This document shows positions 6,610 through 62,051 of a DNA stretch of 64,000 bases, piece by piece. The translations under genes and the position numbers were made by a program. The DNA is from Isurus oxyrinchus (Eukaryota). The notes under the pieces were generated by a model that did not search any database, was not told where the DNA came from, and was given only the letters and a program-made list of their open reading frames with translations. The stretch lies in the NCBI GenBank assembly GCA_026770705.1, contig JANJGN010000150.1, positions 620,001-684,000 of the forward strand, written 5' to 3'. Position 1 is the first letter of the stretch; every line of letters starts with the position of its first letter.

Positions 6610-6726
6610 TTATAAATTCCCATAAACAGAATCCTTGGCAAATTCACCGTTTGCGTAAAGATCATCATCTGTATCAGGATTGACTCCGCGGTTAGATTTC
6701 ATTTCCAGATCCTTCTCATCATTCTT
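6610..6726 (-). CDS. Gene A terminal exon with LYAN and SVYGNL (ITIM consensus)
   Basis: Phase-0 acceptor. KNDEKDLEMKSNRGVNPDTDDDLYANGEFAKDSVYGNL* with TAA at 6612-6610. Confidence 0.8.
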   Translation of the reverse strand, partial: KNDEKDLEMKSNRGVNPDTDDDLYANGEFAKDSVYGNL

Positions 6727-6824
6727 CTGTAATAGAAACAGAAATGATCAGAGTGACAATCAGAGTGATCAGTGTTTAGTATTATTGATCCAAATCGAAA
6801 ATTCCACCCACAATAGATACATTA

Positions 6825-7275
6825 ATTATTGATACTGAACAGGGTTTTATTATTGATAATGAACGGGGTTTGATTATTGATACTGAACGGGGTTTGATTA
6901 TTGATTCTGAACGGGGTTTGATTATTGATTCTGAACGGGGTTTGATTATTGATTCTGAACGGGATTTGATTATTGATACTGAACGAGGTTTGATTATTAA
7001 TTCTGAACGGGGTTTGATTATTGATACTGAATGGGGTTTGATTATTGATTCTGAACGGAGTTTGATTATTGATACTGAACGGGGTTTGATTATTGATACA
7101 GATCGGGGTTTGATTATTGATACTGAACGGGGTTTGATTATTGATACAGATCGGGGTTTGATTATTGATACTGAACGGGGTTTGATTATTGATACAGATC
7201 GGGGTTTGATTATTGATATCGAACGGGGTTTGATTATTGATACTGAACGGGGTTTGATTATTGATTCTGAACGGT
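6825..7275. repeat. 24-bp tandem repeat, about 19 units (GATTATTGATACTGAACGGGGTTT)
   Basis: Direct tandem units. Reads IIKPRS(V/E)S on the minus strand. Confidence 0.95.
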
Positions 7276-7407
7276 GTTGGGTGTGAGTTTGGTTGGGTTT
7301 GGGAGTGACTGTATAAAACATTGCAGATGCAGGACTGGAGCAGCCATATCAATAACCAGGCTACTGGAGCAGCTGAGAGGCTGGGGATCCTGTGGTGTGT
7401 GACTCAC

Positions 7408-7512
7408 CTGATTCCTCCAAGCCCAACCACACTCACAGTTTTCATAAACAGGACCTCGATATTCATCAACACGATGGTTCGATTTGATTCCTGCTTTCCC
7501 CTCGCCTCTCTT
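7408..7512 (-). CDS. Gene A cytoplasmic exon 2 (YEN motif); alternative donors after 7437 (phase 1) or 7408 (phase 0)
   Basis: TATTACAG acceptor. KRGEGKAGIKSNHRVDEYRGPVYEN(CECGWAWRNQ). Two GTGAGT donors. Confidence 0.7.
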
Positions 7513-8023
7513 CTGTAATAGAGATGGAAATGGACAGAGTGACAATCAACATGATGTGTATTCGGTGTTGGGTTTGATTATTGGGGAGAGAGTTCCAGAT
7601 TTCCACTCCCCTTTGTGTGAAGAAGTGCTTCCTGAAATCACCCCTGAATGGCCTGGCTCCAATCTGAAGTTCCAGCCCCCTTGTTCTGGACTCTACCCGA
7701 CCCCCACCACCCACCCCCACCCGAGGGAATAGTTTCTCTCTATCGACCCTATCGAGTGTTTAATCAGTTTGAACCCCTCAATTAGATCCCTCCTTAATCT
7801 TCTAGACCCGAGGGAATATAATCGTAGACTGTGTGTAACCTGTCTGCATAATTTAACCAGAAAGATGTTCTGTACAACAGACTTGAGCCTCACACCCAGA
7901 TCTCAATAATCAGTAGAAATCTTTCAAAGGCATCAATCATTGGAATCTGTCTTTATAAAGTCACAACATCAACAAAGGACGGTGTTGGTGGTGGAAGTGA
8001 ATTCCAATCGTTCCGTTACTTAC

Positions 8024-8108
8024 CCAGGACCTGTCCGACTGCTCGCCTGGGGAGGAACTGCCCACACGCTCTGCTTGGGCTGAATGACCTCTTCCTGTGC
8101 TGCTCCCT
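8024..8108 (-). CDS. Gene A cytoplasmic exon 1
   Basis: 85 nt, phase 2-0, which is the phase needed after the TM exon. (K)GSSTGRGHSAQAERVGSSSPGEQSDRSW, donor GTAAGT. Confidence 0.65.
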
Positions 8109-8864: not shown

Positions 8865-8961
8865 TTTCTCACACACTTGAAGATGAAGAATCCACTCAGT
8901 CCAACATTCAAACAGATTCCAGCTCCAAGCAATCCTGCTTTCCATTCATTGGAATCTCGCC
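8865..8961 (-). CDS. Gene A transmembrane exon
   Basis: TTTTACAG acceptor, 97 nt, phase 1-2. RDSNEWKAGLLGAGICLNVGLSGFFIFKCVRK, donor GTAAGT. Same length and phase as the gene C TM exon. Confidence 0.85.
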
Positions 8962-10195: not shown

Positions 10196-10226
10196 AAAAC
10201 AGAATGTTCAATTCTGTGTAACTCAC

Positions 10227-10508
10227 GTTCCACAGTGATGGTTATGAACCCGTCCACTGCTCCATGTTCATTCTCTGCCACACACTGATAGTCTCCAGTG
10301 TCCCTGGATGTAACGTGAGGAATCACCAACCACAGCTCATTGTTGGAACTTGTTCTGTTCATTGGGACATTAAGATGTCGCCACGTCAGGTTAGAAGCTG
10401 GGAAGCTCTCGACAGAGCAGATTATCACTGCAGGATTCCCCTCAATTATATTGATCGATGAAGCGTTAATCATATCAAGAGAAGTAATTGATAGGTTCCG
10501 TGGTGCAT
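10227..10508 (-). CDS. Gene A C2-set Ig exon
   Basis: 282 nt, phase 1-1. DAPRNLSI...IICSVESFPASNLTW...DTGDYQCVAENEHG...ITVE. Confidence 0.92.
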
Positions 10509-11541: not shown

Positions 11542-11822
11542 ATTCCACAGTGATGGTTCTGAATCCCTCCACTGCTCCATGTTCATTCTCTGCCACACAC
11601 TGATAGTCTCCAATGTCCCTGGATGTAACGTGAGGAATCACCAACTACAGCTCATTGTTGGAACTTGTTCTGTTCATTGGGACATTAAGATGTCGCCACG
11701 TCAGGTTAGAAGCTGGGAAGCTCTCGACAGAGCAGATTATCACTGCAGAATCCCCTCAATTATATTGATCGATGAAGCGTTAATCATATCAAGAGAATTA
11801 ATTGAGAGATTCTGTGGTGCAT
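11542..11822 (-). pseudogene. Gene A C2-set Ig exon copy with 1-bp deletion (frameshifted, skippable)
   Basis: 281 nt versus 282 nt for the paralogue. Plus strand CACTGCAGAATCCCC versus CACTGCAGGATTCCCC. Reads DAPQNLS...IIEGILQ* while the splice sites are intact. Confidence 0.8.
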
Positions 11823-12765: not shown

Positions 12766-13062
12766 CTTGCACAGTTAGTATGAGGGTCCGCTCCGATGAA
12801 ACAGATGGATATCTCACTCTGCAGCTGAGAGTGTGTCCGTGGTGTTTGAGTGATGGGATCAGGGTCAGAACAGAAGTATAGGTCAGAGTGACACCATGCT
12901 GAGTTACAGTGTTTGAGACTGATCCAGGTACGTCAGTGGGAGTGTCCCAGGTTAAGACAGGTGCTGCTGTTCCATTGCACGTTGTGTTGAAGGTGCAGCT
13001 TACATCCACACGCTTTCCTGCAATAATTTCAGCAGGGAATATCGTGGGTTTATCTGTGAAAT
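12766..13062 (-). CDS. Gene A Siglec domain-2 type C Ig exon
   Basis: 297 nt, phase 1-1. DFTDKPTIFP...VSCTFNTTCNGTAAPVLTW...LSCRVRY, including the extra BC-loop Cys typical of Siglec domain 2. Confidence 0.92.
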
Positions 13063-13433: not shown

Positions 13434-13802
13434 CAGAAACGTGAAGCTGGGTTACAGGGTAATAGTTATGTCTCGGACCATTGTCAAATTCTATTCTGAA
13501 AAAATAAGGTCCTGCATCTTCCCGTCTGATGTTGTTTATAATCAGGGAACAGTCGCCATCTTTCAGGTCTCCAGACAGCCGGGTCCGATGGTGGAACCGT
13601 GGTAACTCGTGACTGTGATCCTTGGAGTGAAAGGCTATGGGAGCCCAGGGAATCTGTTTCTCATTATTAAACCAGACTCCACCTCGCGGTTGGTTTTCCA
13701 GACACAATGGATAACTGTAATGACATGGAATCTGTACACACGAACCTTCCTGAGCTGTCACCTCTCGTGGAGTGTCACCTTTCCACTCTTGTGAGGGTTC
13801 AG
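13434..13802 (-). CDS. Gene A Siglec-type V-set Ig exon V2
   Basis: 369 nt, phase 1-1, starts AEPSQEW, YFFR Arg retained, extra Cys in YPLC. Confidence 0.92.
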
Positions 13803-15460: not shown

Positions 15461-15829
15461 CAGAAACGTGAAGCTGGGTTACAGGGTAATAGTTATGTCT
15501 CGGACCATTGTCAAATTCTATTCTGAAAAAATAAGGTCCTGCATCTTCCCGTCTGATGTTGTTTATAATCAGGGAACAGTCGCCATCTTTCAGGTCTCCA
15601 GACAGCCGGGTCCGATGGTGGAACCGTGGTAACTCGTGACTGTGATCCTTGGAGTGAAAGGCAATGGGAGCCCAGGGAATCAGTTTCTCATTATTAAACC
15701 AGACTCCACCTCGTGGTTGGCTTTCCAAATGTGCTGGATAACTGTAATGACATGGAATCTGTACACACGAACCTTCCTGCGCTGTCACCTCTCGTGGAGT
15801 GTCACCTTTCCACTCTTGTGACAGTCCAA
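15461..15829 (-). CDS. Gene A Siglec-type V-set Ig exon V1
   Basis: 369 nt, phase 1-1, AG/GT intact. Motifs GSCVQIPC, W, DCSLIINNIRREDAGPYFFR: Siglec-type B-E cysteines and the F-strand Arg. Confidence 0.92.
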
Positions 15830-19286: not shown

Positions 19287-19326
19287 CTTGGAGAAGTGAC
19301 AGGAGGAAGTAAGATTTCCCGATCAT
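19287..19326 (-). CDS. Gene A signal-peptide exon (coding part; exon acceptor at 19368)
   Basis: ATG at 19326, MIGKSYFLLSLLQ, phase-1 donor CAAG|GTAATA. Identical peptide in genes B and C. Joins V1 as ...LLQVGLSQEW. Confidence 0.85.
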
Positions 19327-22900: not shown

Positions 22901-25243
22901 AATTTATGTTTTATATATTCATTCTTCCATGGGAAGTGGGCATCACTGGCTAGGCCAGCATTTATGGCCCATCCCTAATTACCTTGAGAAGGTGGTGGTG
23001 AGCTGCCTTCCTGAACCTCTGCACTCCATGTGGTGTAGGTACACCCACAATGCAGTTAGAGAAGGAAGTCCAAGATTTTGACCAAGTGGCAGTGAAGGGA
23101 CGGCGATATATTTCAAAATCAGGATGATGTGTGGCTTGGAGGCGAACTTCCAGGTGGTGGTGTTCCCCTATGCCTGCTGCCCTTGTCCTTCTCAATGGTA
23201 GAGATCGTGGGATTGGAAGGTGCTGTTGAAGGAACCTTGCTGAGTTGCTGAAGGTCATGTTGTAGATGGGACACACTGCTGCCACTGTGCATTGACGATG
23301 GAGGGAGTGAGTGTTGCTGTGGTTGAGGGGGAGCCAATCAAGCGGGGCTGCTTTGTCCAGGGTGGTGTCGAGCTTTTGAGTGTTGTTGGAGCTGCACTCA
23401 TCCGGGCAAGTGGAGAGTATTCCATTCACACTCCTGCCTTGTGCTATGTTGATGATGGACAGGATTTGAGGAGTCAGGAGGTGAGTTACTCACCGCAGGA
23501 TTCCCAGCCTCTGAGCTGCTCTTGTAGCCACAATGTTTATGTGGCTGACCCAGTTCAGATTCTCGTCAATGGTAACCCCCAGGCTGTTGATATTCGGGGA
23601 TTCAGTGATGGTGCTGCCATTGAATGTCAAGGGGAGATGGTTAGATTCTCTCTTGTGTGCATTCAGATTAAGAACCTTTCTGTCTTTTCCCCATTTCCCC
23701 TACTCTGACCTTATTTGCTGGGACACTGGTTGATGCTGGTTTCAGTCTCAGTTTGTCTCAGTTGGTCACACTCTGGCCTCTGTCTCGAGACTAATGTTCC
23801 CTCTTGGTAGTGACAGTGATGGGGGTGTTGGGGAGGGTGTGGATATTGACCCCACTGCTCCCCCTCCCCCACTCCACCATTCTATCCTGGGATACCTGCC
23901 AGGATCCTTGTTCCAGCTGCAATGGGCAGCCCTTCCACACTTTCCTGTGGGCCCCGCACTTCATGTGTAAAAGCGCTAAGTTAGAGCAGGGATGGAGAAA
24001 TAAACAGAGGGCATGGGATGAGTGTGGGGGTCTCACAGCCAGAACTGATCCTGCCCTCAACTCTGTGGAAGGGGGGAGGTTTCACCAGCTCTCTGTCTTA
24101 ACAGCATCGTAACCACAGTGTGAAGATTGTCCCCATTCCCTGTATCTTAATAATATTGTAAAGACATCTGGGAGATAGCCTGCAGTCTCTGAAAAAGAAT
24201 TTGGTGTGTTTGCAGCACCACCACTGGCAAGAGAGTGTAAGTACAGTGTGACATGTTTACATGAGAAATTTTCATGATAAATGTGCACACAGGAATTTAC
24301 ATAATTTGTTGGGGAAATGCAATGACATGAATTAACAGATTGGAGCAGGAAGGTTGTCCCAGAGTAAGCTGTTTAATAAAAATATATCTGTACAGAGTTG
24401 TCTGGGCATTTCAATCCCTTGTGACAATAAATGTAATATTATAGAAAATGCAAAAGCTTCTTGTAATCTATCACAGAATAAACAAGTTGCAGAATTCAGA
24501 AAGCACATTCTGAAATGTTAACAAAATTCAGTGACGTCACATTTCTGCTAATTACTATTCGGCCATGTTGGCTGCACGCAGTCAGGCAGTCCCTCGGTTG
24601 TGAGGTGTCCACACAGCAGGACAGGGATGCATCAGCATCAAAGGACATGCTTAGTTGTTGCCGTGCAATGCATTTATTGCGAGCCTGTTGCACACACGCC
24701 CTGTCAAAGGAGCCTCCTTGGTTCCATTCTGAATCGAGGCAGGTCCAAGATACTACAACAACTTGCATTAACATAGCACCTTTAATGTAGCAAACTGTGC
24801 CAAAACTCTTTAGGGGATTGCTAACCACATATAAATCCATCTCTGAGACTCATAATGAGATATTAGGGACAGGTGACAAAAAGCTGAGTTAACAAAGCCA
24901 GTTAATAAGGACCATGTTAAATGAGGAGAGAGAGAGAGCGATAGACAGAGAAGCAGAGGGAGAGAGACAGGGAGAGAGAGAGAGCGATAGACAGAGAAGC
25001 AGAGTGAGAGAGACACAGAGAGAGATAGAGAGACAGGGACAGAGAGAGAGACACTGAATCTCTGTCCCCAATGACTCAGCATCAATTCGTTACTGGGGAA
25101 ACATCACCAACCACAGACCCATTCAGTCCCTTCCTCCCTCTCTCCCCCTCTCCCCCAGTGGGTTGCCTCATGTTCCAAGGAATCATAATCCCTGGCCACA
25201 CCCACAAACCTCCTCACCCCCTCTCCCCATTTCACACTCAATT

Positions 25244-25486
25244 TCACTTGAATCTGATCTGTGCGTATTCCGTCTCCTCTTCCCTGTGGACAGACCCATC
25301 ACCACTGGGCACCCTGAAGACTTGGGGATTGGCGTAGAGAAGGTCGGCGGGATTGTCAGGGTTCCCATGTCCAGCATCGCCTCCCACTGCACCTTCAGAG
25401 AGACCCCGGGGAGCTGGGGTCTCCCCCTCACTAGTTGTGTCTCTGGTTGTGTTCCGGGGCTCAGTAATCAGCACGTTCTGTTTACC
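25244..25486 (-). CDS. Orphan terminal cytoplasmic exon (LLYANP, TEYAQI ITSM), ends RFK*
   Basis: Phase-0 acceptor CTGTAG|GGT. Paralogue of gene C 61803-62051. Confidence 0.7.
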   Translation of the reverse strand, partial: GKQNVLITEPRNTTRDTTSEGETPAPRGLSEGAVGGDAGHGNPDNPADLLYANPQVFRVPSGDGSVHREEETEYAQIRFK

Positions 25487-25943
25487 CTACAGAGAAATGG
25501 AAACAGAAGATATCCTCACATCATTTACTGGCACTGATAGGGTTAAATTATTGTGCAGCCTCGTTACTGTCAGTCGTGGCTCAGTGGGTTTAACTCTCCT
25601 TCCCATGTCTTATGATAGAAACCACCTAAGGCATGTGCAGCACTCTCTCAGTACTGACCCTCCGACAGTGCAGTGCTCCCTCGGTACTGACCCTCCGGCA
25701 GTGCAGTACTCCCTCAGTACTGACCCTCCGGCAGTGCAGTACTCCCTCAGTACTGACCCTCCGACAATGCAGCACTCCCTCAGTACTGACCCTCTGTCAG
25801 TCTCGCACTCCCTCGGTAATGGCTCTGGCGAGTGACGGCTTGGATTCTGCACACAGGTGCCTGGTGTGAGGCTCAATAACATGCACCTTGTAATCAGAGA
25901 GAGGATGAGAGAGAGGGATAGAGATGAAGGGACAGAGACAGAG

Positions 25944-26701
25944 TGTTATGAATCTATTAATGTATGTAATGTAATTGGAAATTGTCTATTTAGACAGAAG
26001 TTCAGTCTGTGGGTATGTTTGTGTGTGTTTTAATTGGACTAAAGCCAGCCAGTCTGGGTACTTTGATGTATCATAGTTTTGAGATGTAAACAAAGAGGTA
26101 AAGTGGTAATTTGCATTTTTAAATAGAACATTCAATGTCGGGGGGTGAAATCTTAAACCAATCAACGTTTATATTACTAATAAAATTGAGACTGTGAAAG
26201 GGGATTTATTGTTAAAAGAGGTGTAGTTCAAAGGTCCTGATGATACAATGAGAATTTACATTCAAATAGAAGCGCTGGGTATAACTTGAGCAGTTTTGTG
26301 TGTGCAGAGCAGAGGCTTGTAACATCAAAGCAGCTGTAAGCCTGCACCTGTCTGCAAAGGAACCAAAGTGAAAGGAACCTCATTTGGAATTTGTGAGGTG
26401 AAAATGCTTTGCCTGGAATCTGCTTAAAGTCTATGGGTTGTCTTAGAGGAGATTAGTTTAAGAATTTGTTAAAAAGTTATGATAATACTAGTTTGTAGCC
26501 ATGTGCATATGTTTAACTTGTGTAAATTAATAAATGTCTCAAGTAGTTTGATATAAAACCATCTTGAGAACTGGTGGTCTTATTCCTGAATTTAAAGCTG
26601 CATCTCACACATTCCATTGGGAAATATAGGTTATGACAGTTGTTTAAAGTTTCCCTCTGGGATTTTAAACAACAGCCTTTACCAGTTGCTGTGTCATAAC
26701 A
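25944..26701 (+). mobile_element. Probable solo LTR (copies at ~29032-29786, ~60482-61230 and 63451-end)
   Basis: Inverted termini TGTTATGA...TCATAACA, internal AATAAA. Carried along in each tail-module duplication. Confidence 0.65.
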
Positions 26702-26836
26702 GAGAGACAGCATGGTACTGAACCATTGCTGACTCCACAGGTACAAATCAGTGGGTAACTGGGCTGGGAATCTGGGACATGTGTTGTCTACACACTGAGA
26801 TTGAAGCTTTGGAGTGAGTGTAAACAGTTCCTGTAC

Positions 26837-26918
26837 CTGGTGCTTCACAGAGAGTGGACTGGGGGTCAATGCAATGTCACTGGTCCCTGAAACTCTCTCC
26901 TCCATCGCTGTCTTTCTC
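26837..26918 (-). CDS. Orphan cytoplasmic exon 1 (RKTAMEERVSGTSDIALTPSPLSVKHQ)
   Basis: 82 nt, phase 2-0, AG/GT intact. Paralogue of 60265-60346. Confidence 0.65.
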
Positions 26919-28226
26919 CTGCAATAACACAATATCACACTGTGGTTATCATATAGCAGAGAGTCAGTGCAGCACAGACACAGAGCACACTGTAACCTTA
27001 CACCAATGACTCGACTGTCTCTTTAAATCACTTCTGCACAAAGCACAGAATTAAGAAGCTCGACACCATCCAGGACAAAGCAGCTCGATTGATCGACACC
27101 CCATCCCCCACATTAAACATTCACTCCCTCCACCATGAACACACAGTGGCAGCAGTGTGTGTACCATCTACAAGATGCACTGCAGCAACTCAGCAAGGCT
27201 CCTTCAACAGCACCTTCCAAACCCACGACCTCTACCATCTAGAAGGACAAGGGCAGCAGACACATGGGAACACCACCACCTGGAAGTTCCCCTCCAAGTC
27301 ACTCACCATCCTGACTTGGAAATATATCACTTCACTGTCACTGGGTCAAAACCCTGGATCTCCCTCTCTAACAGCACTGTGGGTGTACCTACACCACATG
27401 GACTGCAGCGGGTCAAGAAGGCAGCTCACCACCACCTTCTCAAGGGGCAATTAGAGATGGGCAATTAATAGCGGCCTCACCAGTGACAGCCACATTCGAT
27501 GAAAGAATTTAAAATCTCACAGCTCAGGAGGAAGCCACTCAGCCCATCGTGCCTGTGCTGGCCCTTTGAAAAAACTGACCAATTAGTCCCACTACCCAGA
27601 CTGTTCAATCATTCCTGATGGTTATAACCACCACTGTCGATGGACCCTCTGATTTACCATTCTGAATCGAGGCAGATCAACTTTCCTGCAACAACTTGCA
27701 TTTATATGGCACACTTAATGTAATAAACTGTCCCAAATCTCTTCAGGGGATTTTTACCTACATATAAATCCATCTCTGAGACACATAATGAGCTATTAGG
27801 GACAGGTGACAAAAAGCTGATTTCACAAAGCCAGTTAATAAGGACCNNNNNNNNNNNNNNNNNNNNNNNNNNNNNNNNNNNNNNNNNNNNNNNNNNNNNN
27901 NNNNNNNNNNNNNNNNNNNNNNNNNNNNNNNNNNNNNNNNNNNNNNNNNNNNNNNNNNNNNNNNNNNNNNNNNNNNNNNNNNNNNNNNNNNNNNNNNNNN
28001 NNNNNNNNNNNNNNNNNNNNNNNNNNNACTGAATCTCTGTCCCCAATGACTCAGCATCAAGTCGTCACTGGGGAAACATTTCATTCCAAACCACACCAAC
28101 CACAGACCCATTCAGTCCCTTCCTCCCTCTCTCCCCCTCTCCCCCAGTGGGTTGTCTCATGTTCCCAAGAATCTTCATCCCTGCCACCACCCACACACCT
28201 CCTGACCCCCTCTCCCCGTTTCACAC

Positions 28227-28475
28227 TCAGTTTCGCTTGAATCTGATCTGTGCGTATTCCGTCTGCTCTTCCCTGTGGACAGACCCATCACCACTGGTCA
28301 CCCTGAAGACTTGGGGATTGGTGTAGAGAAGCTCGTTGGGATTGTCAGGGTTCCCATGTCCAGCATCGCCTCTCACTGCACATTCAGAGAGACCCCGGGG
28401 AGCTGGGGTCTCCCCCTCACTAGTTGTGTCTCTGGTTGTGTTCCGGGGCTCAGTAATCAGCACGTTCTGTTTACC
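28227..28475 (-). CDS. Orphan terminal cytoplasmic exon (LLYTNP, TEYAQI), ends RFKRN*
   Basis: Open frame with intact acceptor. Second tandem copy. Confidence 0.7.
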   Translation of the reverse strand, partial: GKQNVLITEPRNTTRDTTSEGETPAPRGLSECAVRGDAGHGNPDNPNELLYTNPQVFRVTSGDGSVHREEQTEYAQIRFKRN

Positions 28476-29922
28476 CTACAGAGAAATGGAAACAGAAGAC
28501 ATCCTCACATCATTTACTGGCACTGATAGGGTTAAATTATTGTGCAGCCTGGTTAGTGTCAGTCGTGGGTCAGTGGGTTTAAACCTCTCTCACATGTCTT
28601 ATGAAAGAAAACACCTATGGCAGTGCAGTGCTCCCTCAGTACTGACCCTTCGATAGTGCAGCACTTCCTCAATGCTGACCATCCAACAGTGCAGCACTCC
28701 CTCAGTACTGACCCTCCAACAGTGCAGCGCTCCCTCAGTACTGACCCTCCAACAGTGCAGCGCTCCCTCAGTACTGACCCTCCGACAGTACAGGTCTTCC
28801 TCAGTACTGACCCTCTGACAGTGCAGCACTCCCTCAGTACTGACCCTCTGACAGTGCAGCACTCCCTCAGTACTGACCCTCTGTCAGTCTTGCACTCCCT
28901 CGGTAATGGCTCTGGCGAGTGTCGGCTTGGATTCTGCACTCAGGTGCCTGGTGTGAGGCTCAATAACATGAATCTTGTAATCAGAGAGAGGATGAGAGAG
29001 AGAGAGAGAGATGAAGGGTCAGAGACAGAGCGTTATGAATCTATTAATGTATGTATTGTAATTGGAAATTGTCTTTTTAAACAGAGGTTTAGTCTGTGGG
29101 TGTGTGTGTGTGTGTTTTAATTGGAATAAAGCCAGCCGTCTGGGTACTTTGATGTATAGTAGTTTTGAGATGTAAACAAAGAGGTAAAGAGGCATATTGC
29201 ATTTTTAAAAGGAGGATTCAAAGCCTGGGAGTGAATTCTTAAACCAATCAATGTTTATATTACTAATAAAATTGATACTATGAAACGGGATTTATTGTTA
29301 GAAGAGATGGAGATCAAAGGTCCTGATGATACAATGAGAATTTACTTACAAAGAGAAGCACTGGGTATAACTTGAGCAGTTTTGTGTGTGCAGAGCAGAG
29401 GCTTGTAACATCAAAGCAGCTGTAAGCCTACACCTGTCTGCAAAAGAACCAAAGTGAAAGGAACCTCATTTGGAATTTGTGAGGTGAAAATGCTTTGCTT
29501 GGAATCTGCTTAAAGTCTATGGGTTGTCTTAGAGGACGTTAGTTTGGGAATTTGTTAAAAAGTTATGATAGTACTAGCTTGTAGCCATGTGCATATGATT
29601 AACTTGTGAAAATTAATAAATGTCTCATGTAGTTTGATATAAACCCATCTCAAGAACTGATGGTGTTATTCCTGAATTTAGAGCTGCATCTCAAACATTC
29701 CACTGGGAAATATAGGTTATGACACTTGTTTAAAGTTTCCCTCTGGGATTTTAAACAACAGCCTTTAGCAGTCGCTGTGTCATAACAGAGAGACAGCATG
29801 ATACTGAACCATTGCTGACTCCACAGGTACAAATCAGTGGGTAACTGGGCAGGGAATCTGGGACACATGTTGTCTACACACTGAGATTGAAGCTTTGGAG
29901 TGAGTGTAAACAGCTCCTGTAC

Positions 29923-30004
29923 CTGGTGCTTCACAGAGAGTGGACTGGGAGTCAAGGCAATGTCACTGGTCCCTGAAACTCTCTCCTCCATCGCTGTCTT
30001 TCTC
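29923..30004 (-). CDS. Orphan cytoplasmic exon 1 copy
   Basis: 82 nt, phase 2-0, AG/GT intact. Confidence 0.65.
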
Positions 30005-31177
30005 CTGTAATAACACAATATCACACTGTGGTTATCATATAGCAGAGAGTCAGTGTAGCACAGACACAGAGCCCACTGTAATCTTAGACCAACGACTGGG
30101 ACTGTCTCTTTAAATCAGTTCTATACAAAGCACAGAATCAAGAAGCTTGACACCATCCAGGACAAAGCAGCCCGATTGATCTACACCCCATCCACCACAT
30201 TAAACATTCACTCCCTCCACAACGAACACACAGTGGAAGCAGTGTGTGTACCATCTACAAGATGCACTGCAGCAACTCAGCAAGGCTCCTTCAACAGCAC
30301 CTTCCAAACCCACGACCTCTACCATCTAGAAGGACAAGGGCAGCAGACACATGGGAACACCACCACCTGGAAGTTCCCCTCCAAGTCACTCACCATCCTG
30401 ACTTGGAAATATATCATCGTTCCTTCACTGTCGCTGGGTCAAAATCCTGGAACTCCCTCCCTAACAGCACTGTGGGTGTACCTACACCACATGGACTGCA
30501 GCGGGTCAAGAAGGCTGATCACCACCACCTTCTCAAGGGCAATTAGGGATGGGCATTAATGCTGGCATCACCAGTGACAGCCACATTCGATGTAAGAATT
30601 AAAAATCTCACAGCACAATGTATTTATTGGGATCCTCCTGCACACACGCCCTGTCGAAGGACCCTTTGTGGTTCCATTGTTAATCGAAGCAGATCAGACT
30701 TACTGCAACTACTTGCATTTATATAGCACCTTTAATGTAGCAAAATGTCCCAAGGCTCATCCGGGAATTGTTAGTCACATCTTCACCTGACTCTGAGGCA
30801 CATGAGGAGATATAAGGGACAGGAGACCAACAGCTGAGTCAACAAAGTCAGTTATTAACGGGCATCTTAAAGGAGGAGCTGGAGATAGAGAATGAGTGAC
30901 AGACACAGAAAGAAAGACAAAGAGAGGGAGAGAGAGAACAAGAGAGCGAGAGAGAGAGAGAGAGAGACAGAGAGAGACAGTGAATCTCTATCCCCAGTGG
31001 CTCAGCATCCAGTCCTCTCTGGAGAAGCATTTCATTCCAAACCACACCAACCGCAGCCCAATCCCATCCCTTCCTCCCTCTCTCCCCCTCTCCCCCAGTG
31101 GGTTGTTTCCTGTTCCCAGGAATCTCAATCACTACCCCCACCCCCACACCTCCTCACTCCCACTCCCCATTTCTCAT

Positions 31178-39180: not shown

Positions 39181-39546
39181 CTGAACCCTCGCAAGAGTGG
39201 AAAGGTGACACTCCACGAGAGGTGACAGTGCAGGAAGGTTCCTGTGTACAGATTCCATGTCATTACAGTTATCCATCGTGTCTGGAAAACCAACCGTGAG
39301 GTGGAGTCTGGTTTAATAATGAGGAATGGAGAACATCGTCTATAGCCTTTCACACCAAGGATCACAGTCACGAGTTACCACGGTTCCACCATCGGACCCG
39401 GCTGTCTGGAGACCTGAAAGATGGCGACTGTTCCCTGATTATAAACAACATCAGACGGGAAGATGCGGGTCCTTATTTTTTCAGAATAGAATTTGACAAT
39501 GGTCCGAGCCATAACTATTACCCTGTAACCCAGCTTCACGTTTCTG
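39181..39546 (+). pseudogene. Gene B V2 exon, inactivated
   Basis: CGA->TGA stop at 39297-39299 and donor changed to G|ATAAGT. Confidence 0.88.
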
Positions 39547-40274: not shown

Positions 40275-40571
40275 ATTTCACAGATAAACCCACGATATTC
40301 CCTGCTGAAATTATTGCAGGAAAGCCTGTGGATGTAAGCTGCACCTTCAACACAACGTGCAATGGAACAGCAGCACCTGTCTTAACCTGGGACACTCCCA
40401 CTGACGTACCTGGATCAGTCTCAAACACTGTAACTCAGCATGGTGTCACTCTGACCTATACTTCTGTTCTGACCCTGATCCCATCACTCAAACACCACGG
40501 ACACACTCTCAGCTGCAGAGTGAGATATCCATCTGTTTCATCGGAGCGGACCCTCATACTAACTGTGCAAG
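40275..40571 (+). CDS. Gene B Siglec domain-2 type C Ig exon
   Basis: 297 nt, intact, almost identical to gene A 12766-13062. Donor G|GTTAGT. Confidence 0.9.
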
Positions 40572-40894: not shown

Positions 40895-41032
40895 GACATC
40901 TGAATATCACAATGAACAGAACAAGTTCCAACAATGAGCTGTGGTTGGTGATTCCTGGAGACTGGAGACTATCAGTGTGCTCAGAGAATGAACATGGAGC
41001 AGTGGAGGGGTTCATAACCATCACTGTGGAAC
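40895..41032 (+). pseudogene. Gene B C2 exon remnant (5' half and acceptor lost, internal deletions)
   Basis: Only the MNRTSSNNELWLVIP...ENEHGAVEGFITITVE part is recognisable, with deletions relative to 10227-10508. Confidence 0.8.
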
Positions 41033-42153
41033 GTTAGTTAAGACAAACTTCAACATCTCTCTCAGATTGAAACACTACAAAAACACACATAAATATCCAG
41101 CCTTAAATAGACACCTGCAGACACACAATCCCACATCTATGAGCACACACAAAGACATACTCACAAACAAACACACTAGCACATACTCCCCTGTGGATTA
41201 CCTGACCTCCCTCAGTGCTGCACCGGAGAGTTGACCTGGATTCTGGGATTTGTGTTCCCTTTCATATTTATGGAAGAATATGGAAATTGCAAAGTCTATT
41301 ACAGACACTCAGATGCACAGAGATACTCACAGATACTCTCTGCCTCTCCAACTCTCTATCCTACTTTAAGAACCTTCCTGAAATCTAACTCTTTGACCAG
41401 TCACCAGTCCCAATTCCTCCTTACGTGATTTTCTGTGAAATTTTGTTTGAGTATCTGAGAGTAAGAGGGAAGTGGAGAGGTTTAGGAAGGGAATTCCTGT
41501 TGCTGAAAAGCTTACATCAAGTTCTCAGCTTTCCAGTGCCCATTTTTCACATGATGTCCAATGTCCTTGTTCATAATGGAGATTGCCTATGTAAACGTCA
41601 CGCTGTAGTTACACTCTCCCACCAGTGGTAGCACGGTCGCACTTAACCCTTGCATCTCCAAGCTTTTCAAGCAATTTCACTTCCTAATTTCCTACTATTC
41701 ACCTCAACCATTCCCTGTGGGAGCGAGTTCCACATTCTCCCCTCTCTCTGGGTAAAGATTGGAACTGTTTATTAAGCGGGGGGTGTAAGTCTGTGGGGGA
41801 GTCCATCTCGATCCTGCCCGATTCGCACACGCGTCCGAGATGGATTTCCACCCGGCACTAAACGTTTCCAGAATTTTCTACAGCACAATCCTGTACACAG
41901 CGATGGAGAGAAACATTGGACAGGGAGTCCAACAGCACAATGATCCATTCTCACCAATGTTCCACGCTAAGGGGAAAGTTCCGATTGTCCACTCTTAGAG
42001 TGTTTACAATGAAAACATTCATTCCACATTGAATCCCAGTGGATGGGTCAATATTACAGCAAATGTTGCAGTGATATGAAGCTTGATTGTTCAGCCAGAG
42101 TGAGAGATTGAAAGCGGAGAGTCAGTGATGATTTCTTTCTGTGTGTTCTCTAG

Positions 42154-42293
42154 ACAGTGGAGGAGAGATTCTGCACGTGATCCTGATCCTGGGAATACGA
42201 GCTGTGATATTCCTTGTGCCTGTGGTTATCACTATCGCTGGAGTCTGTGTCTGGGAGAGACAAACAGTGAAAGGAAGTCGACAGACTGTTTGA
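42154..42293 (+). CDS. Gene B terminal TM exon with intramembrane Arg and short tail (activating type)
   Basis: Polypyrimidine TCTCTAG acceptor, phase 1. SGGEILHVILILGIRAVIFLVPVVITIAGVCVWERQTVKGSRQTV*. Arg codon at 42198-42200. Confidence 0.82.
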
Positions 42294-46366: not shown

Positions 46367-46406
46367 ATGATCGGGAAATCCTACTTCCTCCTGTCACTTC
46401 TCCAAG
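46367..46406 (+). CDS. Gene C signal-peptide exon (coding part)
   Basis: ATG, MIGKSYFLLSLLQ, CAAG|GTAATA. Confidence 0.85.
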
Positions 46407-50824: not shown

Positions 50825-51202
50825 TTGGATTGTCACAAGAGTGGAAAGGTGACACTCCACGAGAGGTGACAGCGCAGAAAGGTTCGTGTGTACAGATTCC
50901 ATGTCATTACAGTTATCCATCAGATTTGGTAAAGAAACCACATGTCGGAATCTGGAAAATGAGAAGCTACATACGGAACAAATGGTCTAAATGGTCTACA
51001 GCCTTTCACTCCAAGGATCACAGTCGCGAGTTACCACGGTTCCGCCATCGGACCCGGCTGTCTGGAGACCTGAAAGATGGCGACTGTTCCCTGATTATAA
51101 ACAACATCAGACGGGAAGATGAAGGACCTTATTTTTTCATGATAAAATTTGGCAATGGTCCGAGCCATAACGTTTCCCCTGTAACCCAGCTTCAGGTTTC
51201 TG
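50825..51202 (+). CDS. Gene C V-set exon V1 (essential Arg replaced by Met)
   Basis: 378 nt, phase 1-1. EDEGPYFFMIKF. Confidence 0.92.
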
Positions 51203-54553: not shown

Positions 54554-54922
54554 CTGAACCCTCACAAGAGTGGAAAGGTGACACTCCACGAGAGGTGACA
54601 GCGCAGGAAGGTTCGTGTGTACAGATTCCATGTCATTACAGTTATCCATCGTGTCTGGAAAACCAACCGCGAGGTGGAGTCTGGTTTAATAATGAGAAAC
54701 AGATTCCCTGGGCTCCCATTGCCTTTCACTCCAAGGATCACAGTCACGAGTTACCACGGTTCCACCATCGGACCCGGCTGTCTGGAGACCTGAAAGATGG
54801 CGACTGTTCTCTGATTATAAACAACATCAGACGGGAAGATGCAGGACCTTATTTTTTCAGAATAGAATTTGACAATGGTCCGAGCCATAACTATTACCCT
54901 GTAACCCAGCTTCACATTTCTG
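54554..54922 (+). CDS. Gene C V-set exon V2
   Basis: 369 nt, phase 1-1. YFFR retained, extra Cys in YPSC. Confidence 0.92.
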
Positions 54923-55626: not shown

Positions 55627-57392
55627 ANNNNNNNNNNNNNNNNNNNNNNNNNNNNNNNNNNNNNNNNNNNNNNNNNNNNNNNNNNNNNNNNNNNNNNNNN
55701 NNNNNNNNNNNNNNNNNNNNNNNNNNNNNNNNNNNNNNNNNNNNNNNNNNNNNNNNNNNNNNNNNNNNNNNNNNNNNNNNNNNNNNNNNNNNNNNNNNNN
55801 NNNNNNNNNNNNNNNNNNNNNNNNNAGANNNNNNNNNNNNNNNNNNNNNNNNNNNNNNNNNNNNNNNNNNNNNNNNNNNNNNNNNNNNNNNNNNNNNNNN
55901 NNNNNNNNNNNNNNNNNNNNNNNNNNNNNNNNNNNNNNNNNNNNNNNNNNNNNNNNNNNNNNNNNNNNNNNNNNNNNNNNNNNNNNNNNNNNNNNNNNNN
56001 NNNNNNNNNNNNNNNNNNNNNNNNNNNNNNNNNNNNNNNNNNNNNNNNNNNNNNNNNNNNNNNNNNNNNNNNNNNNNNNNNNNNNNNNNNNNNNNNNNNN
56101 NNNNNNNNNNNNNNNNNNNNNNNNNNNNNNNNNNNNNNNNNNNNNNNNNNNNNNNNNNNNNNNNNNNNNNNNNNNNNNNNNNNNNNNNNNNNNNNNNNNN
56201 NNNNNNNNNNNNNNNNNNNNNNNNNNNNNNNNNNNNNNNNNNNNNNNNNNNNNNNNNNNNNNNNNNNNNNNNNNNNNNNNNNNNNNNNNNNNNNNNNNNN
56301 NNNNNNNNNNNNNNNNNNNNNNNNNNNNNNNNNNNNNNNNNNNNNNNNNNNNNNNNNNNNNNNNNNNAGANNNNNNNNNNNNNNNNNNNNNNNNNNNNNN
56401 NNNNNNNNNNNNNNNNNNNNNNNNNNNNNNNNNNNNNNNNNNNNNNNNNNNNNNNNNNNNNNNNNNNNNNNNNNNNNNNNNNNNNNNNNNNNNNNNNNNN
56501 NNNNNNNNNNNNNNNNNNNNNNNNNNNNNNNNNNNNNNNNNNNNNNNNNNNNNNNNNNNNNNNNNNNNNNNNNNNNNNNNNNNNNNNNNNNNNNNNNNNN
56601 NNNNNNNNNNNNNNNNNNNNNNNNNNNNNNNNNNNNNNNNNNNNNNNNNNNNNNNNNNNNNNNNNNNNNNNNNNNNNNNNNNNNNNNNNNNNNNNNNNNN
56701 NNNNNNNNNNNNNNNNNNNNNNNNNNNNNNNNNNNNNNNNNNNNNNNNNNNNNNNNNNNNNNNNNNNNNNNNNNNNNNNNNNNNNNNNNNNNNNNNNNNN
56801 NNNNNNNNNNNNNNNNNNNNNNNNNNNNNNNNNNNNNNNNNNNNNNNNNNNNNNNNNNNNNNNNNNNNNNNNNNNNNNNNNNNNNNNNNNNNNNNNNNNN
56901 NNNNNNNNNNNNNNNNNNNNNNNNNNNNNNNNNNNNNNNNNNNNNNNNNNNNNNNNNNNNNNNNNNNNNNNNNNNNNNNNNNNNNNNNNNNNNNNNNNNN
57001 NNNNNNNNNNNNNNNNNNNNNNNNNNNNNNNNNNNNNNNNNNNNNNNNNNNNNNNNNNNNNNNNNNNNNNNNNNNNNNNNNNNNNNNNNNNNNNNNNNNN
57101 NNNNNNNNNNNNNNAAACACAGACGCGCACACGCACACACACACACACACAACACAGAGAGGCACACACACACATACACACTNNNNNNNNNNNNNNNNNN
57201 NNNNNNNNNNNNNNNNNNNNNNNNNNNNNNNNNNNNNNNNNNNNNNNNNNNNNNNNNNNNNNNNNNNNNNNNNNNNNNNNNNNNNNNNNNNNNNNNNNNN
57301 NNNNNNNNNNNNNNNNNNNNNNNNNNNNNNNNNNNNNNNNNNNNNNNNNNNNNNNNNNNNNNNNNNNNNNNNNNNNNNNNNNNNNNNNNNNN
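55627..57392. other. Undetermined (N) sequence flanked by CA-rich microsatellite
   Basis: N runs with tiny called islands. Smaller N runs at 11403-11533 and 27847-28027 sit in low-complexity tracts. Confidence 0.95.
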
Positions 57393-58520: not shown

Positions 58521-59191
58521 CTTCACAAGGTCATCTGTCCCTGACATCACCTCATGTGACTCAGGGTCTTGACAGGTTTTAGTCAACAGTAAACAGGCAG
58601 AAATTGGAGATTGATTAATATTCATATATTTCATTGATAACATTATCAATAAATGATGCATTGAAAAGGGTGACCTGTATTTATTGAATGATCAGATCGT
58701 CCCGAAACACTTTACAGTCAACGATATATGTTTGAAGCAATGTCATGTTGTAATGTAGGAAACACGGCACCAACCTGTGCACAGCAAGATCCCACAAAGC
58801 AAGGTGACAGTGATCTGATAATGTATTATTTTAGTGATGTTGGTTGATACGTATATAGAGATCACATGTATAGGGTGGGTCACTAATGTCCCTTTAGGGA
58901 GGGAAACCTGTCCATTTTAACTGGTCTGGGTGTGTATGTGACTCCAGTCTGTAACACCAACATGGTTAACTCTTACCTGCCCTCTGAACTGGTCTCCCAG
59001 TTTGGGACAAACCAGTGGTTCAGGAGGAAGACCCCCCCACCACCTTCTCAAGGGGAAACTAGGGATGGACAATAAATGTCAGCATTGCCCGAGAATGAGT
59101 ATTTAAACACTGAGTGAGTGTATCGCTTCTCGAGATACATCGGAGCATCATTGTAAACCTGTAGTGCAGTAATTAATGGCTGTTTTTACAG

Positions 59192-59288
59192 GTAGAGACT
59201 CCAGTAAATGGACAGTAGGATTGTTCACGGCTGGGATCATGTTGAGTGTTTTCCTGGCTGGAATCTTCATCTTCATCTGTGTCAGAAA
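59192..59288 (+). CDS. Gene C transmembrane exon (uncharged)
   Basis: 97 nt, phase 1-2. RDSSKWTVGLFTAGIMLSVFLAGIFIFICVRK, donor GTAAGT. Confidence 0.88.
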
Positions 59289-60264
59289 GTAAGTCTGAAG
59301 ATTTAACTTGATTTTACTATAAGCATTTGCTTCAATGTTCTTTCCTTAAGTCGGTGATTGTTTCCCTTGGGATCAGCACCAATTCCCTCTCCGTAAGTGA
59401 TCCCTGTGTCCACTGTGATCCGGAGAGAACCTTTCATTGTCCTGTATCCAGGTAAACGATCACGAGACCCAGAGATTCCTCACTCTGCACGATTACTCCT
59501 GGATTGTATCAGGTCACCTTGTGATTCCACACAACCGGAGTGGTGGTTATAACCATCAGGAATGATTGAACAGTCGATTGGGCAGTGGGACTAATTGGAC
59601 AATTTTTACAAAGGGCCAGCACAGGCACGATGGGCTGAGTGGCTTCCTCCTGAGCTGTGAGATTTTAAATGCTTTCATTGAATGTGGCTGTCTCTGGTGA
59701 GGCCGCTATTAATTGCCCATCTCTAATTGCCCCTTGAGAAGGTGGTGGTGAGCTGCCTTCTTGACCCGCTGCAGTCCATGTGGTGTAGGTACACCCACAG
59801 TGCTGTTCGGGAGGGATTTCCAGGAGTTTGACTCAGCGACAGTGAAGGAACGGTGATATATTTCCAAGTCAGGATGGTGAGTGACTTGGAGGGGAACTTC
59901 CAGGTGGTGGTGTTCCCATGTGTCTGCTGCCCTTGTCCTTCTAGATGGTAGAGGTCGTGGGTTTGGAAGGTGCTGTCGAAGAAGCCTTGCTGAGTTGCTG
60001 CAGTGCATCTTGTAGATGGTACACACACTGCTGCCACTGTGTGTTCATGGTGGAGGGAGTGAATGTTTAATGTGGTGGATGGGGTGTAGATCAATCGGGC
60101 TGCTTTGTCCTGGATGGTGTCAAGCTTCTTAATTCTGTGCTTTGTGCAGAAGTGATTTAAAGAGACAGTCCAGTCGTTGGTGTAAGGTTACAGTGGGCTC
60201 TGTGTCTGTGCTGCACTGACTCTCTGCTATATGATAACCACAGTGTGATATTGTGTTATTGCAG

Positions 60265-60346
60265 GAGAAAGACAGCGATGGAGGAGAGAGTTTCAGGGAC
60301 CAGAGACATTGCATTGACCCCCAGTCCACTCTCTGTGAAACACCAG
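60265..60346 (+). CDS. Gene C cytoplasmic exon 1
   Basis: 82 nt, phase 2-0. RKTAMEERVSGTRDIALTPSPLSVKHQ. Confidence 0.82.
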
Positions 60347-61802
60347 GTACAGGAACTGTTTACACTCACTCCAAAGCTTCAATCTCAGTGTGTAGACAAC
60401 ACGTGTCCCAGATTCCCAGCCCAGTTACCCACTGATTTGTACCTGTGGAGTCAGCAATGGTTCAGTATCATGCTGTCTCTCTGTTATGACACAGCAACTG
60501 GTAAAGGCTGTTGTTTAAAATCCCAGAGGGAAACTTTAAACAACTGTCATAACCTATATTTCCCAGTGGAATGTTTGAGATGCAGCTCTAAATTCAGGAA
60601 TAAGACCACCAGTTCTCGAGATAGTTGTATATTAAACTACATGAGACATTTATTAATTTACACAAGTTAAACATATGCACATGGCTACAAACTAGTATTA
60701 TCATGACATTGTAACAAATTCTCCAGCTAACCTCCTCTAAGACAACCCATAGACTTTAAGCAGACACAAGGCAAAGCATTTTCACCTCACAAATTCCAAA
60801 TAATGTTCCTTTCACTTTGGATCCTTTGCAGACAGGTGTAGGCTTACAGCTGCTTTGATGTTACAAGCCTCTGCTCTGCACACACAAAACTGCTCAAGTT
60901 ATACCCAGTGCTTCTCTTTGAATGTAAATTCTCATTGTATCATCAGGACCTTTGAACTCCACCTCTTCTAACAATAAATCTGATTTCATAGTATCAATTT
61001 TATTAGTAATATAAACGTTGATTGATTTAAGATTTCACTCCCAGGCATTGAATGCTCTATTTAAAAATGCAAATTGCCTTTTTACCTCCCTGTTTACATC
61101 TCAAAATTACTTTATATCAAAGCACCCAATTAATCCAAATAAAACACACACAGACACATCCACAGATGAAACCTCTATTTTAACAAAAATAATTTCCAAA
61201 AACATGATATTCATTAATCGCATCATGACAGTCTCTGTCTCTATCCCTACGTCCCTTTCTTTCTCTCTCTCTCTCTCTCTCTCATCCTGTTGCTGATTAC
61301 TAGTTTCATGTTATTGAGCCTCACACCAGACACCTGAGTGCAGAATCCAATCTGTCACTCACCAGAGCCATTACCGAGGGAGTGCGGGACTGACAGCAGG
61401 TCAGTACTGAGGGAGTGCTGCACTGTCAGAGGGTCAGTACTGAGGGAGTGCTGCACTGTCAGAGGGTCAGTACTGAGGGAGTGCTGCACTGTCAGATGGT
61501 CAGTACTGAGGGAGTGCGAGACTGACAGAGGGTCAGTAATGAGGGAGTGTGAGACTGACAGAGGGTCAGTAATGAGGGAGTGTGAGACTGACAGAGGGTC
61601 ACTATTGAGGATGTGCTGCACAGTTGGGGGGGTCAGTACTGAGGGAGCACTGCACTGCCATAGGTGGTATCTTTCAGATGACATGAGAGAGAGGGTTAAA
61701 CCCACTGAGACAAGACTGACACTAATGAGGCTGCTCAATAATTTAACCCTATCAGTGCCAGTAAATGATGTGAAGATGGCTTCTGTTTCCATTTCTCTGT
61801 AG

Positions 61803-62051
61803 GGTAAACAGAACGTGCTGATTACTGAGCCCCGGAACACAACCAGAGACACAACTAGTGAGGGGGAGACCCCAGCTCCCCGGGGTCTCTCTGAAGGTGC
61901 AGTGGGAGGTGATGCTGGACATTGGCACATCGACAAACCTGAAGAGTTTCTCTACGCCAATCCCCAAGTTTTGAGGGTGTCCAGTGGTGATGGGTCTGTC
62001 CACAGAGAAGAGGAGACGGAATACGCACAGATCAGGTTCGAGCATAACTGA
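61803..62051 (+). CDS. Gene C terminal exon with FLYANP and TEYAQI (ITSM)
   Basis: Phase 0. GKQNVLITEPR...EEFLYANPQV...EEETEYAQIRFEHN*. TxYxxI as in the distal motif of CD33-related Siglecs. Confidence 0.85.
   Translation, partial: GKQNVLITEPRNTTRDTTSEGETPAPRGLSEGAVGGDAGHWHIDKPEEFLYANPQVLRVSSGDGSVHREEETEYAQIRFEHN

Follow-up and report, generated by a model that had tools for sequence, protein, structure and literature searches.

Mammalian paired receptors comprise members that carry an ITIM (immunoreceptor tyrosine-based inhibitory motif) as well as short-tailed members with a charged transmembrane segment, as exemplified by SIGLEC5/SIGLEC14 and SIGLEC11/16. The signaling ends follow simple rules: YEN and YAN are motifs for the SH2 domain of Grb2, and a buried arginine in the transmembrane segment, combined with a short tail, is typical of receptors that signal via adaptors with an ITAM (immunoreceptor tyrosine-based activation motif). 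In human Siglec-XII, the N-terminal V domain lacks the essential arginine. Fish genomes are said to lack CD33-related Siglecs, according to a study of salmonid and percid fishes (PMC7226832, 2020).

Here, we describe a 64-kb stretch of vertebrate DNA from Isurus oxyrinchus, hereafter called the window, which contains 6 assembly gaps and 3 transcription units. Gene A occupies 19.3 to 6.6 kb of the minus strand, whereas genes B (33.2 to 42.3 kb) and C (46.4 to 62.05 kb) are located on the plus strand. We consider it likely that the window belongs to a cluster of Siglec-family receptor genes that has grown by duplication, in which a shared kit of ectodomain exons has been combined with 3 old signaling cassettes.

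One Ectodomain Design and Three Signaling Ends

The tail of gene A contains the motifs VYEN, LYAN, and SVYGNL, of which SVYGNL fits the ITIM consensus, while YEN and YAN correspond to the motif for the SH2 domain of Grb2. Gene B has an arginine in its transmembrane segment and a tail of 12 amino acids with no signaling motif, which are the features of an activating member. Gene C has a neutral transmembrane segment and a tail with the sequence TEYAQI, which fits the consensus of an immunoreceptor tyrosine-based switch motif (ITSM) or an ITIM-like motif. Judging from the rules for ITIM, ITSM, Grb2 SH2, and buried arginine motifs, genes A and C are probably inhibitory or modulatory, and gene B is probably activating.

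The leader peptide MIGKSYFLLSLLQ was identified in 3 identical copies in a tblastn search with shark homologs (100% identity), each copy followed by a phase-1 GT donor, in agreement with the identical leader reported in a preliminary description of this DNA. The leader exons are located at 19287..19326 on the minus strand in gene A, where the exon consists of the codons for MIGKSYFLLSLLQ plus 1 nucleotide, and at 33155..33194 and 46367..46406 on the plus strand in genes B and C, respectively. They lie 3.4 to 4.4 kb upstream of the first V-set exon (V1) and were located via database homologs only, the full-length shark homologs beginning with MIGKSYFLLSLLQ. A de novo scan for signal peptides, defined by an ATG, a hydrophobic run, and a phase-1 GT, detected no common leader, and none was located inside the conserved 200 bp upstream of V1.

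Exactly 6 V-set exons were identified in a tblastn search of the window with V-set reading frames, namely 2 exons at 15.8 and 13.8 kb on the minus strand and 4 exons at 37.1, 39.2, 50.8, and 54.5 kb on the plus strand. The exons are 366 to 378 nucleotides long, start after an AG acceptor, and are of phase 1 at both ends, so that any V exon can be included or skipped in frame. The donor is GTAAGT in all of them except the fourth, the second V-set exon (V2) of gene B, in which it is ATAAGT. The double V-set architecture noted previously was thereby confirmed, with 2 V-set exons per gene and canonical splice sites apart from this single donor.

At the amino acid level, the V2-type exons were 87% to 98% identical to one another, with the highest value, 98%, for V2 of gene C and V2 of gene A. 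The first V exon of gene A is likewise a V2-type copy (96% identity), whereas V1 of gene B and V1 of gene C were only 70% to 74% identical to the remaining V domains. The first C2-set exons (C2a) of genes A and B differ by 1 nucleotide. Overall, the features of the preliminary description were found at the positions given there. It was also observed that the V2 exons of all 3 genes encode an extra cysteine in the motif YPLCLENQ or YPSCLENQ (in the regions of 13702-13704, 39273-39275, and 54646-54648), which is not present in the first V exon of gene A (YPAHLESQ).

Affiliation with the Siglec Family

Every intact V exon scored above the Pfam thresholds for V-set and Ig_CD22, and C2a corresponded to C2-set_2. 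The V-set exons are followed by C2-set_2 and Ig_3/I-set exons and then by a single transmembrane exon and a tail, which is the domain order of Siglecs. The V domains were compared by sequence against all PDB chains, and the 18 best matches were all Siglec V-sets. The V2-type domain was most similar to Siglec-5 (E 4e-16), followed by Siglec-8, Siglec-7, CD33, MAG, and Siglec-10 (E about 1e-14 to 1e-13), sialoadhesin (E 2e-12), and Siglec-15 (E 4e-8), while the first non-Siglec protein was pIgR (E 1.5e-7). The match to the V-set of CD22 was much weaker (E 5e-5 versus 4e-16 for Siglec-5). Thus, V2-type domains scored best with Siglec-5, -8, -7, and CD33, and V1 of gene B with sialoadhesin and MAG, which came first in its PDB search, although the margins were small.

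The essential arginine (YFFRIE or YLFRTD) aligned to the sialic-acid-binding arginine of Siglec-5 (YFFRVE) and sialoadhesin (YNFRFE). It was retained in 5 of the 6 V exons, the exception being V1 of gene C with a methionine, and was at least 90% conserved among 30 homologs. The tryptophan in EWKGD aligned to Trp-2 of sialoadhesin. All V exons displayed the cysteine pattern of Siglecs, with C-x4-C in strand B and a cysteine in strand E (SCVQIPC ... DCSL), and an extra cysteine was found in C2a (SCTFNTTCNG ... SCRV). These cysteines of the V and C2a domains would be expected to form disulfide bonds, including one between the domains. The first V domain of gene A was modeled with AlphaFold at a predicted local distance difference test score of 92, and in a Foldseek comparison of the predicted fold with PDB, all of the matches listed down to rank 45 were Siglec V-sets, with TM-scores of 0.80 to 0.89. 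Taken together, the Pfam, PDB, and Foldseek results, the cysteine pattern, and the essential arginine make the placement of genes A, B, and C in the Siglec family, as originally suggested, well supported at the level of sequence and predicted structure.

Conservation of the Three Tail Types in Elasmobranchs

A profile-free search over 1.8 billion proteins yielded 288 matches below 1e-10, many of which aligned the V query in 2 to 4 stretches. Searches were run with individual exons, and comparisons over the full length relied on database proteins. The closest matches were shark and ray models in RefSeq that bear the names Siglec-8, -10, -12, -13, -14, CD33-like, or MAG-like, and relatives with the pipeline names Siglec-8/10/12/13/14 or CD33-like were present in at least 20 elasmobranch species. 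The most similar proteins came from Carcharodon and Cetorhinus, with 90% to 98% identity per exon, in line with the previous guess that the DNA is from a cartilaginous fish. The values for Carcharodon point to a shark closely related to the great white, or else to paralogs that lack annotation. The models of Carcharodon (P0172/P0174/P0198, P0159, and P0015) and Cetorhinus (P0188 and P0002) resembled the genes of the window in the leader, in V1, V2, and C2a, and in the 3 tail types. Such shark models are pipeline predictions that have been named by their best mammalian match.

All 3 tail types were observed in other elasmobranchs. Tail type A, with a C-terminus of the form YxN...YxN[ILVM], recurs in sharks and rays, and Cetorhinus P0188 carries the 3' end of gene A. 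Tail type C, with TEYAQI, was also found in sharks and rays, usually together with a canonical proximal ITIM, LLYANI (P0159, P0013, and P0002). Tail type B, with the arginine in the transmembrane segment, was identified in 4 other shark species, namely Carcharodon (P0172/P0174/P0198), 2 species of Scyliorhinus, and Chiloscyllium (catshark and bamboo-shark proteins P0006, P0185, P0218, and P0022), and is thus conserved in the galeomorph sharks of this sample. A database search with the arginine-containing transmembrane region gave 6 candidates, all from Carcharodon, and was uninformative about how widespread this type is. The recurrence of the 3 tail types across elasmobranchs indicates that the tails are old cassettes rather than local inventions, and it does not support the earlier view of an independently evolved family.

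In lamniform sharks, one V2-type domain (87% to 98% identical) is found on all 3 tail types, and the Carcharodon receptors with the arginine-containing transmembrane segment carry a V2 domain that is 97.5% to 98.3% identical to V2 of genes A and C. Within the window, genes A and C share V2 (98%), while gene B retains a V1 domain with 70% to 74% identity to the others and a C2a domain that is 99.7% identical to that of gene A. The paired-receptor logic proposed in the preliminary description therefore stands in so far as one ectodomain design occurs on 3 signaling ends, and at the level of the family in Carcharodon. Strict pairing is only partial inside the window because gene B is now without the shared V2; moreover, V1 of gene B is just 70% to 74% identical to the other V domains, and the LYANPQV sequence in the tail of gene C falls outside of the ITIM consensus. 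Carcharodon P0172 may be the ortholog of gene B, since its partial first V domain resembles V1 of gene B by eye.

Gene A and the 85-Nucleotide Cytoplasmic Exon

The exon structure of gene A could be followed on the minus strand from the leader to the stop codon. The 2 V-set exons, both with the essential arginine, are located at 15461..15829 (V2-like; Pfam, PDB search, and AlphaFold model) and 13434..13802 (tblastn and Pfam). They are followed by C2a with 3 cysteines at 12766..13062 (Pfam C2-set_2 and splice sites) and a second C2-type exon (C2b, Ig_3/I-set) at 10227..10508. A sequence comparison identified a damaged duplicate of C2b at 11542..11822, with a deletion of 1 nucleotide and a change from TGG to TAG, and the donor of this duplicate lies 8 nucleotides from an assembly gap (11403-11533) that is intronic in gene A. 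The neutral transmembrane exon AGLLGAGICLNVGLSGFFIFKCV, which ends in phase 2, is located at 8865..8961 and is defined by splice sites and RNA-like joints. The cytoplasmic part is encoded by an 85-nucleotide exon, here called cyt0, at 8024..8108 (GSSTGRGHSAQAERVGSSSPGEQSDRSW), by cyt1 at 7408..7512 (...DEYRGPVYEN...), and by the last coding exon at 6610..6726, which contains LYAN and SVYGNL and ends with DDLYANGEFAKDSVYGNL and a stop codon; joints and splice sites support both of the latter. A 24-bp array at 6825-7278 is located inside the last intron.

To follow the splicing of the 3' half, contigs from 3 RNA-like runs and one DNA-like run were placed on positions 6500-10600 of the window at an identity threshold of 95%, the RNA nature of the runs having been guessed from their behavior. 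Joints of the GT..AG type were observed in the RNA-like runs at 10227>8961, 8865>7512, 8024>7512 (in 2 runs), and 7408>6726, whereas none of them was present in the DNA-like run. According to the phase arithmetic, the direct joint 8865>7512 leads into the last 2 exons in a frame without tyrosine of about 45 amino acids, ending with RMMRRIWK and a stop, and the frame with VYEN, LYAN, and SVYGNL can only be reached via the 85-nucleotide exon. Carcharodon P0015 and Cetorhinus P0188 contain this exon as well, and P0188 has the entire order of transmembrane segment, cyt0, cyt1, and last exon (cyt2) of gene A. The motifs VYEN, LYAN, and SVYGNL were thus found where they had been reported, but the previously unlisted 85-nucleotide exon is needed to bring them into frame.

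Forms of gene A with and without the 85-nucleotide exon both appear to exist. Skipping of this exon could represent a splice switch, or else noise or a signal from a paralog. The tyrosine-free frame, suggested by the RNA joints alone, had been considered as the tail of gene A and was dropped when the 85-nucleotide exon was recognized. In addition, one RNA-like run contained a backward joint, in which the end of a C2b-type exon is connected to where C2b begins (10228-10508 on the minus strand). The joint has one extra letter, which is the same as the final base of the damaged copy of C2b. This joint indicates that transcripts with 2 consecutive C2b-type exons exist, either from gene A or from a paralog.

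Gene B and Its Damaged Exons

Gene B contains V1 with the essential arginine (YYLFRTDF) at 37086..37451, as supported by Pfam and the PDB search, C2a at 40275..40571 (Pfam, splice sites, and alignment to gene A), and a terminal exon at 42154..42293 that is defined by splice sites and homologs, all on the plus strand. The terminal exon encodes the arginine-containing transmembrane segment EILHVILILGIRAVIFLVPVVITIAGVCVW and reads DSGGEILHVILILGIRAVIFLVPVVITIAGVCVW, with ILILGIRAVIFLV within the transmembrane segment, followed by the tail ERQTVKGSRQTV and a stop codon. The arginine is located within a hydrophobic run of 29 residues, and the 12-residue tail is free of tyrosine, as previously described. 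This end was 93% identical to Carcharodon and 80% identical to Scyliorhinus, and the same type of transmembrane segment was found in Chiloscyllium.

The V2 exon at 39181..39546 is dead, with a stop codon at 39297-39299 and a donor changed from GT to AT. It was 94.5% identical to V2 of gene C, while the flanking introns were 94% to 95% identical; the exon has thus diverged as much as the introns, which fits with a dead exon. In Carcharodon, V2 of the gene that resembles gene B is intact. A relic of C2b at 40897..41034 (+) was recognized by sequence comparison and lacks the 5' half and the acceptor, in addition to having 2 internal deletions. The leader, V1, C2a, and the transmembrane exon, 843 nucleotides in all, are open and have good splice sites. 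Models of 270 to 273 amino acids with a single V domain, C2a, and an arginine-containing transmembrane segment have been annotated in Carcharodon and Scyliorhinus, and the remaining exons of gene B match them.

Gene C, Assembly Gaps, and Orphan Tail Modules

In gene C, V1 at 50825..51202 (Pfam and exon boundaries) has a methionine in place of the essential arginine (YFFMIKF), while V2 at 54554..54922 (Pfam and alignment) has retained it. The neutral transmembrane exon WTVGLFTAGIMLSVFLAGIFIFICV is located at 59192..59288, the cytoplasmic exon RKTAMEERVSGTRDIALTPSPLSVKHQ at 60265..60346, and the last coding exon (...FLYANPQV...TEYAQIRFEHN, stop) at 61803..62051, all on the plus strand with splice sites and, for the cytoplasmic exon, a tblastn match. 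A neutral transmembrane segment with a TEYAQI tail is therefore encoded here, as stated before. LYANPQV was present in all 4 copies of the last exon in the window, whereas the relatives have LLYANI.

Between V2 and the transmembrane exon are 4 assembly gaps at 55628..57392, separated by only 3, 3, and 68 read letters and thus effectively one unread block. This is where the C2 exons of gene C are expected, and C2a should be located inside the block, judging from the spacing in gene B. For gene C, no match to C2a or to a membrane-proximal C2 exon as in Carcharodon P0159 was found outside the gaps, and no reading frame spans any of the assembly gaps in the window. The Ig and tail halves are presumably parts of one gene, based on their strand and order and on the identical architecture of P0159.

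Several C-type tail modules are located elsewhere in the window. An inverted set at 24666..32345 (-), in the interval that separates the heads of gene A and gene B, contains copies of the last exon at about 25241-25486, 28230-28475, and 31181-31426 and copies of the cytoplasmic exon at about 26837-26918 and 29923-30004, all of which are open. The gap at 27847-28027 falls between these copies, and no transmembrane or Ig exon was found upstream of them on their strand. They may represent orphan exons or a misassembly. Downstream of gene C, open modules of the same type, consisting of the short cytoplasmic exon and the last exon, are tandemly repeated at 62621-64000 (+).

Duplications and Proposed Exon-Sized Exchanges

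A unit of about 13 kb was duplicated in tandem to give rise to genes B and C, with 92% to 94% identity between the copies. In addition, mosaics limited to single exons were identified. C2a of genes A and B differed by 1 nucleotide in 297, and the homology faded within about 130 nucleotides on either side. Conversely, the V1 exons of genes B (37086-37451) and C (50825-51202) were only 84.7% identical, whereas the 350 nucleotides of intron located immediately downstream were 96.9% identical. The dS value for V1 (B versus C) was 0.28, which is far above the divergence of the introns. The pattern in V1 fits with an exchange in which one exon was replaced by that of a diverged paralog, and the mosaics together are consistent with exon-scale exchange among paralogs.

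Copies of the cyt0 exon of gene A, about 96% identical over 320 bp, were found at 19777-19854 (-), 32624-32704 (+), and 45836-45916 (+), about 450 to 530 bp upstream of each of the 3 leader exons. The presence of a cyt0 copy before every leader suggests that the duplication unit ran from a cyt0 exon to the next gene. Cetorhinus P0190 and P0193 appear to read from a cyt0 copy into the leader and V exon of the next gene out of frame, and would then be read-through chimeras. Arrays of a 33-bp minisatellite were observed at 11955-12646, 25635-25801, 28621-28905, 31684-32345, 43734-45556, and 61372-61647, in introns and flanks of genes A, B, and C as well as of the tail modules. Further arrays consisted of 37-bp repeats (157-1419 and 52449-53586) and related 74/111-bp repeats (4106-4655). 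It is possible that the minisatellite arrays serve as substrates for unequal exchange. Open frames that resemble fragments of transposable elements by a look at the sequence were located both inside and between the genes, at 21318-21862 (-), 42639-43064 (-), 51423-52122 (+), and 57933-58271 (-).

Comparison with Described Receptors

The cluster is similar to human SIGLEC5/14 and SIGLEC11/16 in that similar ectodomains are found on ITIM-bearing and charged-transmembrane receptors in a single cluster with signs of exon-limited exchange. It differs from SIGLEC5/14 in having 3 signaling ends rather than 2 and in that the activating member of the window is without the shared V2. As in SIGLEC12, there are 2 tandem V-set domains, and the N-terminal V domain of gene C is devoid of the essential arginine; unlike in SIGLEC12, the double V-set is common in the shark family and the V exons can be left out with the frame intact.

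The tail of gene C is reminiscent of CD33-related Siglecs, in which an ITIM is combined with the ITIM-like TEYSEI, in that 2 tyrosine motifs are located at its very C-terminal end (LLYANINFSKL...TEYAQIRF in other sharks versus LHYASLSF...TEYSEIR in Tupaia CD33 P0097). The resemblance to tetrapod CD33-type tails is at the level of motifs only (E 0.1 to 0.4), and the proximal LYANPQV of the window is off the ITIM consensus. The tail of gene A has YEN, YAN, and a C-terminal ITIM in the manner of CD22 and Siglec-10-type tails, such as the turtle CD22-like/Siglec-10 protein P0014 (...VYENM...IVYSNV), a likeness that comes without a significant alignment; the shark ectodomain, however, is unlike that of CD22.

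Alternative Explanations

That the genes belong to another group of the Ig superfamily, such as pIgR, CD300, PILR, or TIM-like receptors, is very improbable, since the matches to pIgR, TIM-3, JAML, and PILR were weak and partial (E 1e-7 to 1e-3), whereas Siglecs scored 5 to 9 orders of magnitude better across the whole domain, accounted for all of the structural matches listed down to rank 45, and are represented by a Pfam profile, Ig_CD22, that was above threshold. It is less far-fetched, but still improbable, that these are receptors with a Siglec fold that no longer, or not solely, read sialic acid and have proteins or other glycans as their ligands. The methionine in the N-terminal V domain of gene C would agree with this, as would the V1 exons being far more different than the introns (84.7% versus 96.9%), which is expected for changing ligands, but 5 of the 6 V exons have kept the arginine, the adjoining aromatic residues, and the tryptophan aligned to Trp-2 of sialoadhesin.

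For gene B, the alternative is that it is a decaying pseudogene, so that the transmembrane exon with the arginine is a relic and the window contains no working activating receptor. We regard this as somewhat unlikely. It would account for the stop codon and lost donor in V2, for the truncation of C2b, and for the intron-like divergence of V2, which fits with neutral drift, and the splice support in the RNA-like runs is limited to the 3' half of gene A, although genes B and C are presumably also expressed. Both lesions are, however, located in exons that cannot be spliced, one for want of a donor and the other for want of an acceptor, and skipping of either keeps the frame. Moreover, the 843 nucleotides of the other exons are open with good splice sites, C2a is only 1 nucleotide away from that of gene A, and proteins of the corresponding architecture and length (270 to 273 amino acids) are annotated in Carcharodon and Scyliorhinus. 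Gene C might similarly be an assembly chimera, with V exons (50.8 to 54.9 kb) and transmembrane and tail exons (59.2 to 62 kb) that stem from different genes or misplaced contigs, given that 4 gaps of undefined true size lie between the halves, the expected C2 exons are missing, and the tail modules exist in multiple, inverted, and in part orphan copies. This is unlikely because Carcharodon P0159 has the order leader, V1, V2, C2a, C2, the same transmembrane segment (97%), and the same tail, with which the window is consistent in both strand and order.

Several observations nevertheless weigh against a cluster of 3 intact receptors with a shared ectodomain kit. The shared V2 is lost in the activating-type gene B, which has 2 dead exons, V2 and C2b. 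The Ig and transmembrane parts of gene C are split by unread gaps, its V1 has a methionine instead of the essential arginine, and its proximal motif is degenerate, with a proline at position +3 of LYANPQV. For gene A, the tyrosine-free form that skips the 85-nucleotide exon was seen at a higher contig depth in 2 of the 3 RNA-like runs, although contig depth is a poor measure, and the RNA-like contigs could stem from close paralogs at the 95% threshold.

Proposed Mechanism and Implications

We propose that each gene was assembled from one kit, in which a leader exon is followed by one or two V-set domains of the sialic-acid type and by C2-set domains, and that recent duplication and, as it appears, exon-sized sequence exchange have maintained the likeness of the kit exons. 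With a neutral transmembrane segment, 2 YxN motifs, and the C-terminal ITIM SVYGNL, receptor A would deliver inhibitory or adaptor signals via SHP-type phosphatases and Grb2. Receptor B, with its buried arginine and tail of 12 residues, would pair with an ITAM adaptor like DAP12 or FcR-gamma, the genes for which are located outside the window, and hence be activating. Receptor C, with a neutral transmembrane segment, a distal TEYAQI, and a degenerate proximal motif, would have an inhibitory or switch function.

A more tentative proposal, which we find possible rather than probable, is that the 3 tails predate the radiation of modern sharks, and for tails A and C also the split of sharks and rays, that the ectodomain kit has moved among these backbones, and that the 85-nucleotide exon is a splice switch. 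If true, this exon would toggle receptor A from a form with tyrosine motifs to a tailless form, and the origin of paired Siglecs of the CD33-related type would date back to early jawed vertebrates, contrary to the statement for fish genomes (PMC7226832).

No paper that describes this family, on which the preliminary description had reserved judgment, was retrieved when the literature was searched for Siglecs of sharks or elasmobranchs and for paired receptors, while relatives have already been labeled by the RefSeq pipelines. The family is thus visible in the annotation, and the novelty would lie in its description and functional test rather than in its existence. A large elasmobranch family that has CD33-like tail motifs and an activating-type partner in addition to its Siglec V-sets would, if it holds, bear on the timing of paired Siglec signaling and provide a natural system in which to study the sharing of ectodomain exons by receptors that differ in sign.

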